64,000 bases of DNA from Chlorokybus atmophyticus (Eukaryota > Plantae > Mesostigma and Chlorokybus algae). Location: assembly GCA_009103225.1 (NCBI GenBank), contig RHPI01003642.1, positions 797,099 through 861,098 of the forward strand. Direction: 5' to 3'. Under the pieces are notes generated by a model, which was given only the letters and a program-made list of their open reading frames with translations, was not told the DNA's origin and searched no databases. Within the stretch, counting starts at the first letter, position 1. Every line of letters begins with the position of its first letter. Both the position numbers and the translations under genes were made by a program. This document shows positions 33,180 to 46,263 of this stretch, in pieces.

Positions 33180-36100
33180 ATGGCATCGCAGACGTCGCTC
33201 AACCTCCGTCAAAGGCAGTATGGTGCGTACTTTGTCTGGTTGAGTGCAACGGTCTCCGAGCTGGTATGCTAGTGGTGAAAACGTTGCATACCACGCCAAG
33301 TCTAGGCTTTAACTGCTGCCTACCGGCACTGTGTGTAGTACGCAGAAACCGCTAATCGCAAGCTGCACGCATTCAAAGTTGATTGTATATGCTATCACAG
33401 ATCAACAGTGCATGTGGCTGGACACTCAGATGCTCTTTCACGCTAGCAAGTCGAGGCAAAGCTTGCTTCATGCACGTCCAGGACATTAGCCTGTAGCATC
33501 AACATGACGGCGTCATTCTGCGCAAGCCTTGATGCTTAACAATCGTGTCATGTCGCAACTTTAATTGCTGCTTCTGACATTGCAATCAGTCGCAACTAGC
33601 GCAAGGTGTTGTCGTCTTATGGTTTGGACGTTGCCAACCATGCATGCCGACATATGGGCTGCAGAGGCATTGCGTTGGTAGTGCATGCGTGCACTGTAGC
33701 TGGCATAACATCAAGCTGTGTTTGGCAGACGCCATTGTGCGCATGCTGAATTTGAATGCAACCATCACCTCTTCCGGTGCGGGCGAGCAAGAGGAAGTGT
33801 ACAAAGTGCTTGTGCTTGACAAGTATTGCCGCGATGTTATCTCACCGCTACTCAAGGTAAGGTCCTTATTCCATCCATGTTGTTACAGACTGACAGATGA
33901 CTGCATTCTTGGCCAAGCATAGCTGCTTCTCTGTTGTTATACCAGCATGCCCTGTGCAGGTAAATGACTTAAGAAAGCATGGCATCACTCTGCATTTGCT
34001 GATCGATGCAGAAAGGCAACCAATAGCAGATGTGCCTGCAATCTACTTCGTGCAACCCACCGAACAGAACGTCAGAAAGGTGGTCATGACTCTCAGTTGA
34101 CACATGGCTTTGGTCTTGATAATGCAAGCATGGCTGAAAGGGCACATTATCACAGATTCTGGCTGATGCGTCTCGCGGACTTTATGACTCAATGCACCTC
34201 AATTTCTCATCATCACTACCGCGGCCCTTGCTGGAGCAGCTGGCCACAGGCGCTGTTAAAGCTGACTGCTTGCACCGAGTTGCGAAAGTTTACGATCAGT
34301 ATGTCGGGTTTGTTGCGTTGGAGCCTCGAATGTTTACTCTTGCGCAGCCCAGGTCCTATGCACAACTGCATGACCCTACAGCCTCAGACACGTAAGCCGG
34401 CTGTAGTGTTGATAACCATGAAACAATTGCATTGAAATTTTCTGAAGAGATGCCCAACATCGATGCCACAGGGATGTGGAGGCCGCAGTTCAAGAGATTG
34501 TTAGCGGTATCTTTGGTGCGCTAGCCACGTTGGGTGCCGTGCCAATCATCCGGTGTCAGAAGGGTGGTGCAGCAGAGATGGTTGCAGCGCAGTTAGATGC
34601 GCGATTGCGGGACCATCTCAATTCAAGGCACAACTTGTTTGCCGACGCTCCACTGGCTGCATCAACATTCCAAAGACCACTGTTATGCCTGTTCGACCGC
34701 ACATTTGACCTTTCTGTCATCTTGCAGCATGCTTGGAGCTACCAACCCCTGGTAAGCAGCTGGGAAGGGGACACATTGCAGTTGCTGATCTAGCCGCTGC
34801 AGCTTTGCAGCGCACTTGAATACCAACTGCTCATGTGCAGGTACATGATATCCTAGCCTTGAAGTTGAACCGGGTTACGGTAGCTGCAGAAGGCAGCACA
34901 GGGGGACCATCTATCACCGCCGGCAAAAGGTCGTACGACCTTGATGAGTCTGATGCCTTTTGGGTCACCAATGCTAACAGCCCGTTCCCAAAGGTACTGC
35001 TTAAACGCTGCTCTTGCTGTCCATCCGTCACAGTTTCGGCCAGCGTGTCTGCGAAGGATGTTCGCTGTTTGTTCGTGGAGCATTGGTCTTTTGTGGCACG
35101 CCCAGGTCGTTTGTTTTGATAAAGCATTTTGCATGCAAGCACTGCTGGTAAGTTTCCAGCTGAACTGCAGGTGGCTGAAGAAGTTGAGCTCCAACTCACA
35201 AAGTACAAGCTGGATGTGGAGGAGGTGAACAAGAAGACTGCTGGGAAGGCAGATGAGTTGCTGGATGGTGAAGGGACTGCCTTGCTAGGCAACACAAAGC
35301 ACTTGGTTTCCGTGGTGAACTCGCTTCCAGGTCAGTACTCGTGTGTTCAGCAGTTGCTGCCAATTGCTACAAGCACTTGCTACAAGACACATTCAAGGGC
35401 GTTTGTATGCTCGCGCCTTGTTGCAAACAGAGTAGCGCACGTCCCTCACTGGTGTGCAAACGTTGTTGCAGAGCTGACCGAGAGGAAACGCATCATTGAC
35501 AAACACACGAATATCGCCACCGCGCTCCTGGGCCACATAAAGTCACGCGCCATTGATGCTTTCTGTTCATTGGAAGACGAGCTGTTCACCAAAGGCGCAG
35601 CAGACATGTCGGGGCTGCTGGCAGCCATACACCCGTCCGCAAAGGGCACACCTGAGGACAAATTGCGTCTGGCTGTTGTGTACATTCTTTGCACGGCTGA
35701 GCCACCCAGCTCAACAGACCTGGCCTCGATTGAATCCACTTTGCAAGAGAGCGGAGCACCGCTATTGGCGTTGCGTTACGTGAGGCAGATTCGAGCCATC
35801 AGCCAGAGCATAGTCACGGGCAGCACCGCTCCATCCTCCGTCACGAACATAGCCGGTTTGACCAGCCGGTCGCAGCTGCTGGACTGGGCGGACAAGCTGT
35901 ACGGCTCCAGCATCAGCGCGGTGACTGCCGGTGTCAAGAACCTGCTCTCGGGAGTCCGCCAGCTGGCTGCTGTCCGCGTGATGGAGGCGCTGATGGAAGG
36001 CAAGCAAACTCCCGAGACGGATGCGTACTTGTACTTCGACCCGAAAGGCCCCAGAACTGCCCCATCCGCAGCGCCAGTGCAAAAGGGGCCTTTCAAGGAA

Positions 36101-36271
36101 GCTATCGCGTTTGTCATTGGTGGCGGCAACTACAAAGAGTACCTGGGCCTGCAAGAGTTTGCCAGCAAACATACTCCACCCAAGTCCGTAGCGTATGGCT
36201 CTACAGAAGTTTTGACAGGGACTGAGTTTCTGGAACAGCTCACGGAGCTCGGACAGAAAACGTCCACGTGA
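33180..36271 (+). CDS. SLY1: Sec1/Munc18-family protein SLY1
   Basis: MASQTSLNLRQRQY|DAIVRMLNLN, YKVLVLDKYCRDVISPLLK|VNDLRKHGITLHLLI...DVPAIYFVQPT, RPLLCLFDRTFDL...HAWSYQPL, IDKHTNIATALL and EAIAFVIGGGNYKEY...YGSTE. TGA at 36269-36271. Confidence 0.96.
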
Positions 36272-40315: not shown

Positions 40316-41128
40316 GCATTGAGAGCGTAGCGTCGACGCATGGCTTATGCGCCTTTGTTGATGTCGGCGCAAAGGGCGGAACACAAGTAGTTCACTCGGC
40401 TTGATTCACAACCGAGTGCGACGAGTGAGTGAATCAATGAGCAATGTCATTGAACTCGTCTTTCCCCAGGTGCTATTCTGGGGGCCGCGCTCGCTTCCAC
40501 GTGGAGCGCTGACAAGCATCGGCATCTTCATCAGCGGCGGCGGCGGTGGCGGCGGCGGCGGCGAGTGTGGAGCTGGAGCCGTAGTTGTTCTTCTACACCT
40601 GCATCAGGTTTGCATCACGTCATGCAGTGCGTGGTTCTCTCTGATCTGTGCTGGAAACAACAGACTCTTGCGCGCTTGGTTTGGCCTGTCTCCTGGCCTG
40701 TCTAAACTGCACTTTCTGAAAACATATGGAGAACAAGAGTACGAGACTCGTGCAAGTAGCCGTGTTTGAAGCGACTCGCTGAAAGCGCAGTTGATATCAC
40801 GCTGATTGTTCATGCCTAATTGTATCTGTTCCGTGTGCTGTACGTGTAACTGAGTGAAGCAACAACTCCTGCACCTCAGCGCAGCAAGCATCTTCTAGTC
40901 TCTGTCAAGTGTGAGATACGGATTGACGCAGAAACTGTCTCACATGCAAGTCCATTCAGGCGTGAACCAAGCAGACACATCTGTCTGCTTAGCAATCACG
41001 TGTTGGACTCTATCAAGGGATGACTCACTTACAGAGATAAGTATGTTCTAACAGTCTACGTCACAAGTATGCGCTTACAGGGTTGTCGTTCATCAAAAAC
41101 ACGCGTTCATGTTGCACAGGCACACGCA

Positions 41129-44100
41129 ATGCCGCACATAACGCTCGGCGGCCCCGCCTCGCGCGAAGTGGCCGTGTGCTCCTCATCATCATCATCATCA
41201 ATCAAGCGAGTTCACATCTATGCTGATGCGGAGCACGCCGCTCACGCAGCATCCGCCATCATCGCCGACATCCTCAACCGCACCAAGAACAGCCCATCCG
41301 GTTGCTCACTGGGGCTCGCCACAGGGAACTCACCCATACACGTAAGACAAACAAGTTGTTGTTGGGTTGTCATCGTTGCATTCACCAGAGACGCGCGCAC
41401 AAGCACGCGCACGCATGCACACACGCGCGTGCACACACCCACATGTCTCATACAACATGTGTGTGTCCCAGGTGTACGACGAGTTGGTAAGGCTTCACAA
41501 ATATGGCGCAGTCTCCTTCTCTCACGCGCGAACATTCAACCTCGACGAGTACTACCCCATCCCCCACTCCTCTCCCCAAAGCTACCACTCCTTCATGCGT
41601 GCTCACCTCTTCGAGCGTGTCGATCTCGACCCCGCACGCGCACACGTGCCGGACGGGGAAGTGGGTGCTAAGGAAGTTGATGAGTATTGCCGCGAGTACG
41701 AGCGGAAGGTTGTTGAGGTGGGAGGAGGGGTGGATGTGCAGATACTGGGAATCGGAAGGACGGGACATGTTGGGTTCAATGAACCGGGAAGCGCGAGGGA
41801 CTCCGTCACGCGGCTGGTTCGCCTCGACAAGGTAAATGTGTTGAGTCAAACAATTGTCGACATGTGCGTGTTGGTGTGCGTGTGCATGCATGAGTGTTAG
41901 TGAAGCGAACTTTGCCTTATCGTAAACTCAGGTCACCAGAGTGGACGCGGCAAGCGATTTCTTTGGGGAGGCAAACGTGCCAAAGCATGCCATCACAATG
42001 GGTATGGGCACAATTATGCGGGTGAGTACCGATAACGAACATGCCAGATCTGTTGCAGGTCTGTATGCACGTGGGCGTGGCGGATGTGTGCACGCGTGCT
42101 CTGTTGTACACTACTTCAGCCCGTGCTTGCGTGCACCACCCAATGTTTCATCTGTATCAGGCCAAGAAGATCATCCTGCTAGCATTCGGCGAGAACAAAG
42201 CCGCCATCATCAAACGCGCCCTCGAGGGCCCCGTTACACCCGACATCCCCGCAAGCTTCCTGCAAGTCAGTGCAGTGGACACCCACTAACCCACCCACCC
42301 ACACATGTTGACTCACTCACCCTCCCCACACGCACGCAGACCCATCCCGACGTGACCGTGTTGCTCGACGACGCCGCGTCCTCCTCCTTGACATCTGTTG
42401 CGACGCCGTGGCTGGTGCCGGGTTTGGCGTCCTCCCTCGACTGGCGTAGCGCGGGGAAAGGGAGTGATGCTTCAGCTTCACTCCTGGAGGCGAAGGCTGT
42501 CACGTGGTTGGCAAAGCAACGCGGCAAAGGGATTATGAGACTCGATGAGGACGACTACCTCGAGGCCGGACTCGGGGTGAGTTGTGGGGGACTGTTTGTG
42601 GCTGACTTGTGTTTGGTTGGTTGGTTGTGTACATGTGAACAATATTGTATGCTTCACTTTAGCTGCCTGTATGCCGCAGCAGTTCACGCAGCTCTATGTA
42701 TCTCCCCCTGCAGGACTTGGTGGATTGCTACCCCTCTGCTGCTGCGCTCAATGCAGATGTGTTCCAGCGCCTGTCGGCAACCATAACCACCTCCCCAGGC
42801 ACATTCAACCCGCCCGACACGCAGGTGTGAGCCACACTCACGTGTGGATGGATGGATGAGTGCGTGCATGCGTGAACGCAGAACGCATGCGCATGTGAAT
42901 GCATGAGCACGCGCGTGCGTATATGCATGCATGCATGCATGCGTGTGTGCCTGTGTTTGTGCGTGCGTGAGTGCGTGTATGGCTGTATGAGAATGCATGC
43001 ATGGGTATATGCGTCAGTGCGTGCGTGTATGCGTGCGTGCGTGCGTGCGTGCGTGTGTCCACCTGTACATCATCAATAACAACCAATTCTTTCTTCCTGG
43101 CAGGGTGGTGACAAGGGCAAGTTGACAGCTGACGGCTTGCATGTGAGCGCCGTCTCCGGCGTGTCCACAACATCATCCTCGGACCCGCGGCGTGTGTTGG
43201 TGCTTTCCCCTCACCCGGACGATGACGTCATCTCCATGGGTGGCACCCTCGCCAACCTCGCGAACACCCAACACGACAACAACAACAATAACATTGAAGT
43301 GCATGTGGCGTACCAGACCAGCGGGTGCATCGCCGTCCACGACCACGACGCCCTGCGATACGCACGCTTCGCCGACGCGTGGGACAGGGAGACCGCTATG
43401 GTGGGAGAAGCAACGCAGGACCAACGCAAAGGCGTGCCCTCGCTGGCGCAAGAAGCGGTGAAGACGGTCCAGACTGCCCTCGCCAACAAAGCACCCGCGC
43501 AGGTGAGACAACAAGTTGTTGGTGGTGGTGGTGGTGGGTTACATGTTGGGTATATGCTCTCCAGGTGGATGCGCTCGTGGTGCAGCGGTTAAAGACGCTG
43601 ATACGCGAAGAGGAGGCGCGCAGTGCGGCGAGGAGTTGCGGGGTGCGGGACGGCAACATGCATTTCCTCAACATGCCTTTCTATGAGACAGGTTCGTTGC
43701 GAGTGTTGTTGTGCGCTTGTACGCGCGTGCACAAGTGCTTATACAAGTCTGTCGTGCAGGCGCTGTAGTTAAGAAGCCATTGTCCGAGGAGGACGTTAAC
43801 ATCGTTGTGGATCTCTTTGAGCGCATCCGGCCTTACCAGGTGACAGCTACTCACCATTGATGTACACACCCACAGTTGTGCTGTTCGCTCTCCTGCATAA
43901 GCGCGCACGCGCGCATGCGCGCATGCAACCACCAACCAACGCGCATGCGCGCATGCATCAAAACAGATCTATGCGGCTGGTGACCTGTCGGACCCACATG
44001 GGACACACCGGACGTGCCTGGCGGCAATCCTGCGTGCCCTGCGCATCGTCAGCCAGCGCGCATGGTTCACCGCTCAACACACGCGCGTCTACCTCTACCG

Positions 44101-44517
44101 AGGCGCATGGCAGGTAATTGCGCAAACACGCACACGTACACGCACATGTACACACATTTTTTTTTTGCAACATTAGGAGTGGGAGGCGTACGAGGCTTCA
44201 ATGGCCGTGCCAATGGATGCCGTGGCTATGTCGCGCAAGACGGCGGGTATATGGCACCACCAGTCTCAGAAAGACCCGGCGCCGTTCCCGGGAAGCGACC
44301 CGCGCGAGTTCTGGCAGCGGGCTCGCGCCCGCAACGGACACACCGCCGACGTGAGTGAGAGTGTTCATGTTTGAGTGAGTTAATGGGAAGTATGTGGTCA
44401 GTGGTGATGAAGGAGGGTGTGTGCTTATGTGTGGGGATGGGTGTGCAGGTGTACAGGGGAATGGGGCTTGGAGATTGGGAGGGCATGGAGCTGTTTGTGG
44501 AGTTGCGATTGGAGTAG
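41129..44517 (+). CDS. nagB: Long-form glucosamine-6-phosphate deaminase fused to a PIG-L/LmbE-like deacetylase domain (Bacteroidetes-type NagB architecture)
   Basis: NagB motifs LGLATGNSP, TFNLDEY, LGIGRTGHVGFNEPGS, AITMG and PASFLQ. C-terminal domain VLVLSPHPDDDVISMGGTL, AYQTSG, HFLNMPFYET, IYAAGDLSDPHGTH, YRGAWQEW, HQSQKD...DPREFWQRA. About 11 GT-AG introns; TAG at 44515-44517. Confidence 0.92.
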
Positions 44518-46263
44518 AGAGGGGGTGCCACTTGTATCGGCCGCCCCCGAGTTTGCGCACGCATTCAGGAGGGAGTTGCTTACGACGTGTAGTATGTAGT
44601 GTGTTGTCTCGCATTCAGTCATGCAACTTTTCAACGGTGCAACAAGCAAGATGCAAGCCGGGTGTCTCTTGACACCTGTGGTGTGCAGACACTCATGGCT
44701 GCTACTGCAGTTGGTTCCTGCACTGTATGCATAGGGTATACACTGCGCATGCCATATGCAAACACACATTCATACACCACACTGCACTGCTACAGCAATA
44801 CTCCGCCTCTTCCTCCTGCAGAACAAGAATACAGTTTAATGCGTGTTATTAGAAGCGACGATTTGAAGCAACAAGCAAAACATGCTAATATCTTTTCTAC
44901 AAGTCATACATTGCAGCACTCACTGCACATTCATTGATGTGCAGTGAATGCTGCACACCATTGACATGCGGCTATGTACAAGGTTACAACTACCATACCG
45001 ATGCGTATTCAAACAACTGTAAAGTATATAATTGTATGTCATGGTTCACACCTTATCGACACAATGCTGAATCCGAATCAAACATTGTCAAGCCATTGAC
45101 TGTAACATGGCTCATGAACGGTATGTTGCAATGCACGTTATATAGCTGTTTGCAATGGCAAGCGCGTGACTTGTTATGAAAAGAACAGTTTTCAACACAT
45201 TATGACTCTCTACAGTACTCAACAATATTAAATCCATGCGTTTGGTATAGAGTGTTACCATAGATTCCTACATCCTATACAATGCGGTATTCAATCAATT
45301 CCAATGCGGCGCGCGAAGTGCAAGATTGTCATGTTAGATGTAAATTTCGTTATCATTTCATAAATCGCATTTAAAAATAGTTGTACATTATCATAATGTA
45401 CAATGTATGATACCCATACATGAATATTGATTTTTTTATCATTGCTTGGTCTGCTTTGAACAATCAATTCATTGCATTGGTTCCAACATTCGGTACATAG
45501 CTTTCGAATCGTATATTATATTGCTTGACGCGGCATTGATAAGTCAAGATCAACGTACGTTGATTGAGTAACATATACATCGCTTAACTACTAGTAGTAC
45601 CAATACTACAAGATGTACCAATGCTAGTAACACTTATGCACACAGAAAATCTTACATACGCTGACGATTGATACTTTTATTTAAACGGTTTCTATATTGT
45701 GAGCACCGCGATTTTCTTACGCCTCTTGCAAAGGCGACACGCGATTACTGAATGTGTAGCAATGATAAGTTGACATGAAACCAAATTAAGTAGGTGTCTT
45801 ATGCATAAACACACTCTATGATTTTTACATTCTGAAAACCGCATATACGCCATTTTCTCATGCGAGCAGTGATACTTACAACAAACGTGACCAAAGCAAC
45901 CACACACGCCAATTGTACATAACCACACGAGCATACCGCTATCACCCCACAAAACCAAGCAACATACAACAAAACGTTAAGACTCAATTGCTGTTGGAGC
46001 ACCCTTCTTTGCTGCATGCGATCTACAGCTCGAATGCCAAGTGCATAATGCACCACCAACTCGTCAACCACAACCGCATTTGCATGACGCATCTCAAGCT
46101 CTTCCTTGGTAGTGGGTCGCACCTGTGGAAGATATCCAAGACGATTCCTCAAAAGCCGAACACTGCCATTGGCAGAAGCCAAGGCATTATAATACCTCCC
46201 CGCGGCATTGTCGTCTACGATGCTAATCACACGATCTTGTCAAGCGATTGTTGCCGCCCTATA

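Follow-up and report, generated by a model that had tools for sequence, protein, structure and literature searches.

A transcribed nuclear gene of the long NagB family in the green alga Chlorokybus atmophyticus

This article concerns a single gene within a stretch of 64,000 nucleotides from the green alga Chlorokybus atmophyticus (assembly GCA_009103225.1, contig RHPI01003642.1, positions 797,099 to 861,098 of the forward strand). The window, in which all coordinates of the Chlorokybus locus are given below, is the whole of that stretch. The coding region runs on the plus strand from an ATG at 41129 to a TAG ending at 44517, and its product carries a NagB-type glucosamine-6-phosphate deaminase domain followed by a deacetylase domain of the PIG-L (or LmbE) type. 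The locus had previously been read from the letters alone, hereafter the sequence-only reading, as an intron-rich fusion of these two enzymes and a possible one-gene module for the catabolism of N-acetylglucosamine (GlcNAc). The protein belongs, over its full length, to the long NagB family (NCBIfam NF002557 / PRK02122), and the locus as a whole is quite probably best explained as an expressed nuclear long NagB gene of bacterial origin, encoding an amino-sugar enzyme whose functions are predicted from its relatives. The architecture is that of a known and curated family, which makes the finding itself an ordinary one, and the gene is already part of the public Chlorokybus proteome annotation.

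Gene structure and transcription

The coding sequence of 2112 nucleotides (nt) is spread over 12 coding exons and comprises 703 codons plus the stop. Its introns, put at about 11 in the sequence-only reading, number exactly 11 within the coding region, all of them of the GT..AG type and confirmed by transcripts. Counting an untranslated exon and an intron that the transcripts add on the 5′ side, the full gene has 13 exons (12 of them coding) and 12 introns. The transcript evidence consists of spliced contigs from public C. atmophyticus runs belonging to two studies. One contig of 2397 nt spans the whole gene with zero sequence differences, 10 of the 11 coding junctions are tabulated from transcripts, and the eleventh (43502/43565) is seen in contig pieces of the second run. 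The gene is transcribed and spliced as modelled, with one spliced transcript spanning both the NagB and the PIG-L domains. Since spliced transcripts reproduce the gene structure, contamination is excluded, and the earlier view of a spliced nuclear green-algal gene holds. The translations of all 12 coding exons are identical, exactly and in order, to a public protein of 703 residues (eukprot jgi/Chlat1/5205/Chrsp33S00394, here labelled P0121), which came up when 1.84 billion cluster representatives were searched by phmmer with the translation of exon 2. P0121 was used as the sequence in the full-length protein analyses.

All parts of the gene lie on the plus strand. Coding exon 1 shares the segment 41120..41341 with the rest of the 5′ untranslated region (UTR) and encodes residues 1-71 (coding part 41129-41341), while exon 2 (41472..41831, residues 72-191) holds the core of the NagB domain with the motifs NLDEY and GHVGFNEPG. 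They are followed by exon 3 (41932..42021, residues 192-221), exon 4 (42161..42265, residues 222-256) and exon 5 (42340..42576, residues 257-335), in which the NagB domain ends at about residue 275 and a helical middle domain starts. The remainder of this middle domain is encoded by exon 6 (42714..42824, residues 336-372). Exon 7 (43104..43502, residues 373-505) begins with a disordered linker and then enters the LmbE/PIG-L domain with its HPDD motif. Exon 8 (43565..43691) covers residues 506-547 and the first base of codon 548, exon 9 (43760..43839) the remainder of that codon through residue 574, exon 10 (43967..44113) residues 575-623, including DPHGTH, exon 11 (44177..44350) residues 624-681, and exon 12 (44449..44517) residues 682-703 and the TAG.

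The 5′UTR exon at 40536..40607 is given by 72 nt at the free end of the spliced contig (before 41117), and its 5′ limit is therefore a minimum; the last 30 nt of this end match the window at 40575-40604, a unique place. The 5′UTR intron, 40608..41119, is again GT..AG, with a junction made ambiguous by a shared CAG. On the other side, the 3′UTR occupies 44518..44700 and extends past 44700, the transcript contig covering 44449-44700 and onward. A (GGC)n run is found at 40530-40562, at the start of the 5′UTR exon. Intron 6, of 279 nt, is mostly a low-complexity stretch rich in (TGCG/TGCA)n at 42840-43070, of which 42910-43064 was skipped as a repeat in the read comparison. About 5 kb upstream of the gene, a long open exon on the plus strand (35129-36268) matches the Sec1 family (PF00995, 115 bits), a eukaryotic trafficking gene, and this confirms the nuclear context.

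Family, fold and active sites

The sequence-only reading had likened the architecture to the long bacterial form of NagB, and the profile of that family, NF002557, indeed matches P0121 at 763.9 bits against a cutoff of 384, with residues 27-701 aligned to profile positions 30-651 of 653. The nagB equivalog TIGR00502 scores 241.9 bits (cutoff 236.9). Within Pfam, Glucosamine_iso (PF01182) covers residues 33-258 at 77.8 bits, above gathering, and PIG-L (PF02585) covers residues 404-598 at 51.7 bits, against a gathering threshold of 28.2. Searched singly, exons 2 and 4 match Glucosamine_iso and exons 7 and 8 match PIG-L, and in NCBIfam 10 exons were colinear on the one 653-position profile of NF002557, named ‘glucosamine-6-phosphate deaminase-like protein’. 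Neither NagA (TIGR00221) nor an amidohydrolase family is present among the NCBIfam and Pfam matches of P0121. Judged by these profiles, the protein does not belong to the NagA family and could at most act like NagA.

An AlphaFold2 prediction that drew on 67 homologues is confident (predicted local distance difference test, pLDDT, 87.2; predicted template modelling score, pTM, 0.87) and shows three folded parts. The first, residues 25-275, is the NagB domain, which matches the monomeric NagB of Bacillus subtilis (2bkv) with a Z score of 37.8 and a root-mean-square deviation of 0.9 Å over 242 residues, and the Escherichia coli and human enzymes with Z of about 37. The B. subtilis enzyme (2BKV/2BKX) is 41% identical and has the same GIGR(N/T)GH(I/V)GFNEPG loop, but it is a stand-alone protein of 242 residues with neither a middle nor an LmbE domain. 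The second part, residues 276-372, is the helical middle domain, well conserved and without a Pfam model. It is separated by the linker (residues 373-395) from the third part, the LmbE/PIG-L domain of residues 396-703. Over residues 400-703 or so this C-terminal domain (C-domain) has the fold of the LmbE/PIG-L de-N-acetylases (Z 17-23), namely BshB (6P2T, Z 22.6), BC1534 (2IXD, 22.0), the Pyrococcus diacetylchitobiose deacetylases (3WE7 and 8BGO, about 20) and MshB (1Q74, 17.6), together with their HPDD ... HxxH metal motif. It differs from them in its low identity (18-23%), in extra helices (about residues 452-529) and in being fused to NagB. At the sequence level, its only matches in the Protein Data Bank (PDB) are the Pyrococcus deacetylases, and no solved chain spanning both the NagB and LmbE domains was found in PDB sequence and structure searches.

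Both halves had been described as intact, and this description stands: their Pfam domains score above gathering and, as the catalytic and metal-binding residues are kept, both look catalytically competent. The motifs themselves lie where they had been placed, NLDEY at residues 94-98 (41538-41552, with D96), GHVGFNEPG at 169-177 (41763-41789, with H170 and E175), HPDD at 409-412 (43212-43223, with H409, D411 and D412) and DPHGTH at 583-588 (43991-44008, with D583, H585 and H588). D96, H170 and E175 align with D72, H143 and E148 of E. coli NagB and are invariant in the 67 homologues; their catalytic roles are presumably those of the Asp, His and Glu of the E. coli enzyme. The position of E. coli D141 is occupied by Thr168 in Chlorokybus and by Asn in B. 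subtilis NagB, and the active-site loop of the N-terminal domain (N-domain) is of the B. subtilis type. As for the C-domain, these homologues, drawn from several phyla as well as the algae, show no variation at H409, D412 and H588 and conserve D411 and H585 at 90% or more. By analogy with MshB and Dac, the His and Asp of HPDD and the second His of HxxH are taken to be metal ligands, and an Asp to be the general base. In one verrucomicrobial long NagB (L001, 3800-5698) the sequence SPLPDDH stands in place of the SPHPDDD of all other homologues, and the first zinc-binding His is missing, which means an inactive LmbE domain or else a sequencing error in the metagenome-assembled genome.

The Chlorokybus protein is colinear end to end with the bacterial long NagBs, shares their three-part architecture and their invariant residues, and is 47-53% identical to its bacterial homologues and about 50-51% identical to its algal ones. 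Unlike the bacterial genes, that of Chlorokybus is nuclear with 12 introns, and its product has small insertions, for instance at residues ~292-301 and, Asn-rich, at ~430-436, as well as a divergent middle-domain motif. BT_0258 of Bacteroides thetaiotaomicron is an example of the long form. So, probably, is Fjoh_4557, the nagB of the Flavobacterium johnsoniae chitin utilisation locus, by analogy with Flavobacterium L043, in which nagB lies next to a GH20 gene in the same way.

Distribution and origin

Two word searches scored at least 8000 homologues each, overwhelmingly bacterial or metagenomic, and a one-genome-per-species scan gave at least 579 loci, in Bacteroidota, Planctomycetota, Verrucomicrobiota and Balneolota. 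The homologue lists hold the best 120 of the at least 8000 scored, and six members among the best 120 listed are eukaryotic: Chlorokybus, three Coccomyxa species, [Myrmecia] bisecta and Micractinium. The algal members surfaced in a search with P0121 and then in one with a profile of algal sequences; a word search with a bacterial full-length homologue gave no eukaryote among the matches listed, the best of at least 8000, which are bacterial. The set of 1.84 billion representatives is clustered at 50% identity, which hides algal relatives inside bacterial clusters and leaves its search without weight on absence elsewhere, and none of the fragments from the search of these representatives grouped with the algae in an N-domain FastTree. 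Four trebouxiophyte genes sit on nuclear contigs of 0.28-10 Mb among eukaryotic neighbours and have 14-21 introns; trebouxiophyte copies are publicly annotated, as ‘probable glucosamine-6-phosphate deaminase at N-terminal half’. No amino-sugar or chitin genes were seen beside the algal copies in the flanks examined, whereas bacterial long nagB sits in amino-sugar or chitin loci. One of the public models, the Coccomyxa elongata protein P0285 (930 residues), carries at its N-terminus an additional hydrophobic region, some 250 residues long, without counterpart in the other Coccomyxa orthologues, probably a gene-model fusion with the upstream gene. In both Coccomyxa loci (L081, 10481-13060; L084, 8025-10310) the downstream gene encodes an NTF2_SigF-like protein, so that local synteny is conserved within the genus.

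Literature searches found neither a description of the green-algal gene nor an assay of the C-domain, and a review of plant hexosamines mentions NagB only as the E. coli enzyme expressed in Arabidopsis. Anaerobic ciliates are reported, from transcriptome data, to have acquired genes termed nagB-PIGL laterally from prokaryotes (Mar Life Sci Technol 2026, PMC13198582). These genes present the same fusion in a eukaryotic host reached by bacterial transfer, and are likewise read as serving amino-sugar degradation. In contrast to Chlorokybus, the ciliates belong to a different eukaryotic lineage, and an independent origin is assumed; the terms Chlorophyta, green alga, Viridiplantae and Coccomyxa do not occur in that paper (PMC13198582).

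The history of the algal genes can be followed both in a tree and in their introns. In the main maximum-likelihood (ML) tree (47 rows, 651 columns, LG+C20, unrooted), the six algal proteins form one clade, with an ultrafast bootstrap (UFBoot) of 100 and an SH-aLRT of 99. Five of the 11 Chlorokybus coding introns occur at the same alignment column and in the same phase in all four trebouxiophyte genes that were mapped: those before residues 222 (before exon 4), 336 (before exon 6), 506 (before exon 8) and 624 (before exon 11), all in phase 0, and the phase 1 intron within codon 548 (after exon 8). To locate each trebouxiophyte splice junction, public proteins were compared with the genomic DNA across a short stretch around it, and all five shared introns fall in unambiguously aligned, conserved sequence. 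The hypergeometric probability of five coincidences by chance is about 3e-10, or 3e-5 if only one tenth of the sites could take an intron. The single clade and the shared intron positions thus point to descent of the algal genes from one intron-bearing eukaryotic gene, and on this sequence evidence the bacterial transfer is old and single, not a recent event in Chlorokybus. A recent direct transfer from bacteria into Chlorokybus, or an assembly contaminated with bacterial DNA, could appeal to an identity with bacterial homologues as high as that with the algal ones. Its probability is nonetheless negligible in the face of twelve spliceosomal introns, all confirmed by transcripts, of eukaryotic flanking genes such as the Sec1-family exon, of the five intron positions held in common with trebouxiophyte orthologues and of the monophyly of the algae; the transcripts, the shared introns and the algal clade rule it out.

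As to the bacterial side, the unrooted trees place the algal clade in the midst of Planctomycetota-like sequences (Phycisphaera L048, L061, P0359, P0281 and P0280), and an N-domain FastTree with many intermediates places the trebouxiophytes within such sequences. When ten short NagBs are used as outgroup for rooting, a tree constrained to hold a clade of the algae and 21 Planctomycetota-like sequences gains 20.9 log-likelihood units over the free quick tree (p-AU, from the approximately unbiased test, 0.82). A bacterial origin appears well supported, being backed by the distribution and favoured by the topology, and the nearest sampled relatives suggest Planctomycetota-like bacteria as the donor phylum. 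The sequence-only reading had looked to phylogeny for a sign of horizontal transfer, with vertical inheritance across eukaryotes as the result that would speak against it. A bacterial origin is supported, but through an old transfer that Chlorokybus shares with trebouxiophyte algae (given the algal clade and the five shared introns), and vertical descent within the green algae is left unrejected by the AU test (p=0.127).

The gene may have come to Chlorokybus by vertical descent with many losses or by transfer from alga to alga. That it came from a Coccomyxa-like trebouxiophyte, and not by inheritance from the ancestor that Chlorophyta and Streptophyta share, is somewhat unlikely. Such a transfer would agree with the ML tree, where Chlorokybus is sister to Coccomyxa inside the trebouxiophytes (98/99), with a sixth intron, before residue 373, common to Chlorokybus and Coccomyxa only, and with the lack of any other streptophyte among the best 120 matches listed; the known carriers of the gene, moreover, are mostly terrestrial or symbiotic algae. 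But the branch of Chlorokybus is very long and is likely to be drawn towards the long stem of Coccomyxa, Chlorokybus falls outside the trebouxiophytes in a quick tree from a subsample, and the AU result just given leaves a topology like the species tree unrejected. The sixth intron, besides, sits in the variable and poorly aligned linker, and a scan of viral contigs yielded short-form NagBs and one long form at 42% identity, with no close relative as a candidate vector.

Proposed function and its alternatives

The protein is predicted to be cytosolic, since any extension at its N-terminus is too short to be a transit peptide. By family, fold and residues, the N-domain would convert glucosamine 6-phosphate (GlcN-6-P) to fructose 6-phosphate and ammonium, in the non-allosteric manner of the B. 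subtilis type. The C-domain, by its fold and its invariant metal site, would be a zinc-dependent de-N-acetylase freeing the amine of a GlcNAc-type substrate for the same pathway, with GlcNAc 6-phosphate (GlcNAc-6-P), free GlcNAc and chitobiose as candidates. The physiological role is likely the salvage or catabolism of amino sugars, drawn from the alga's own glycans or wall or from fungal or bacterial wall material.

The bacterial copies provide the comparison. Within ±4 kb of long nagB at 78 bacterial loci, the recurring neighbours are SusC-like receptors (17 loci), GH20 hexosaminidases (14), NagX-like glucosamine N-acetyltransferases (8), AnmK (8) and ROK proteins (7), a neighbourhood that fits the use of amino sugars, chitin and peptidoglycan. 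The nagB of the F. johnsoniae chitin locus adjoins a GH20 gene (PMC5127042), and growth on mucin and on GlcNAc induces BT_0258 (PMC13634575). NagX-like transmembrane genes (NF046061, below cutoff; Pfam HGSNAT_cat) recur beside long nagB, as at 5892-7037 of L058, and hint at the handling of free glucosamine in these loci. In three Flavobacterium loci (L014, 2584-3705; L041, 2610-3731; L042, 1433-2569) a canonical nagA immediately precedes long nagB, that of L041 scoring 294 bits for TIGR00221 against a cutoff of 225.65; the two genes apparently form one operon.

What the C-domain might do has been considered in three ways. It could deacetylate GlcNAc-6-P, in which case one polypeptide would lead from GlcNAc-6-P through GlcN-6-P to fructose 6-phosphate and ammonium with no need of NagA, as the sequence-only reading had imagined, and the alga would reach the nitrogen of chitin or peptidoglycan by means of one gene. 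The two steps are consecutive, and fusions of consecutive enzymes are, we infer, common; the metal triad and the general-base Asp are invariant or nearly so; 75 of the 78 bacterial loci show no canonical nagA within 4 kb on either side, where GH20, ROK kinases and AnmK are frequent; and the protein has no TIGR00221 match of its own. On the other hand, NagA, the amidohydrolase-fold GlcNAc-6-P deacetylase that performs the reaction proposed here for the C-domain, is of an unrelated fold and family, and all the LmbE-fold enzymes matched are known to act on unphosphorylated GlcNAc conjugates. The three Flavobacterium loci, moreover, have a canonical nagA directly upstream of long nagB, B. thetaiotaomicron possesses, in addition to BT_0258, three genes for NagA (PMC13634575), and F. 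johnsoniae possesses the NagA Fjoh_3974 (PMC5127042). Replacement of NagA by the C-domain is possible, if doubtful, being somewhat weakened by the coexistence with nagA and by the substrates of the relatives. Deacetylation of free GlcNAc or chitobiose in the archaeal style, as by the diacetylchitobiose deacetylase of Pyrococcus and Thermococcus, after which a separate kinase would make GlcN-6-P for the NagB half, is an equally tentative proposal and seems at least as likely. The two domains would then catalyse non-adjacent steps of one pathway. This accords with the sequence-level matches of the C-domain in the PDB, all of them Pyrococcus deacetylases, with the structural Z scores (about 20 for them, 22 for BshB and BC1534), and with the ROK kinases or regulators, GH20 and NagX-like genes (8 loci) near the bacterial copies, which point to a traffic in free glucosamine and GlcNAc; it is also compatible with nagA in the same genomes. 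Yet the identity to the Pyrococcus enzymes is only 18-23%, the sequence-level match is confined to the HPDD region, and no glucosamine kinase was identified in the alga in this analysis.

A third and very unlikely explanation would deprive the PIG-L half of catalysis and make of it a ligand-sensing or oligomerisation module, regulating a NagB domain that has no E. coli-type allosteric site. The closeness of the N-domain to the monomeric, non-allosteric B. subtilis enzyme speaks in its favour, as does the Leu that replaces the first zinc-binding His in the verrucomicrobial L001, while the invariance or near-invariance of H409, D412, H588, D411 and H585 in the 67 homologues is the pattern of a working metal site.

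Several observations weigh against the explanation favoured above, that of an expressed nuclear long NagB gene of bacterial origin with functions in amino-sugar metabolism. The TIGR00502 score clears its cutoff by a narrow margin. Outgroup rooting of the long NagB tree is unstable: a free quick search with the short-NagB outgroup puts the root beside the algal stem, and a FastTree of the N-domain alone leaves Chlorokybus apart from the other algae. The eukaryotic distribution is drawn from lists of the best 120 matches, and further eukaryotic carriers may exist. Of 206 family columns with a conservation of 95% or more, the Chlorokybus protein keeps 181, the lowest retention of the 12 sequences checked (91-99% for the other eleven); its terminal branch measures 1.8-2.0 against a median of 0.3, about six times that median; and the middle-domain motif TITGWPGG reads TITTSPGT. 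The long branch, the lost columns and the changed motif together make an altered or relaxed function of the Chlorokybus protein possible. No published enzyme activity was found for any long NagB, the C-terminal LmbE domain included, and the F. johnsoniae nagB protein could not be expressed, its deletion having no phenotype (PMC5127042).

Two points are of modest value beyond the locus itself. The introns shared between a deep-branching streptophyte alga and the trebouxiophytes either date a bacterial transfer to early in green-algal evolution or reveal a transfer between algae. The activity of the LmbE half of any long NagB bears on whether bacteria that degrade chitin and mucin, and these algae, can deacetylate GlcNAc by a second route that does not involve NagA. 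An unlikely and more far-reaching reading would make the fused LmbE domain a true deacetylase of GlcNAc-6-P (or GlcNAc) and the gene a trait for mixotrophic nitrogen scavenging.

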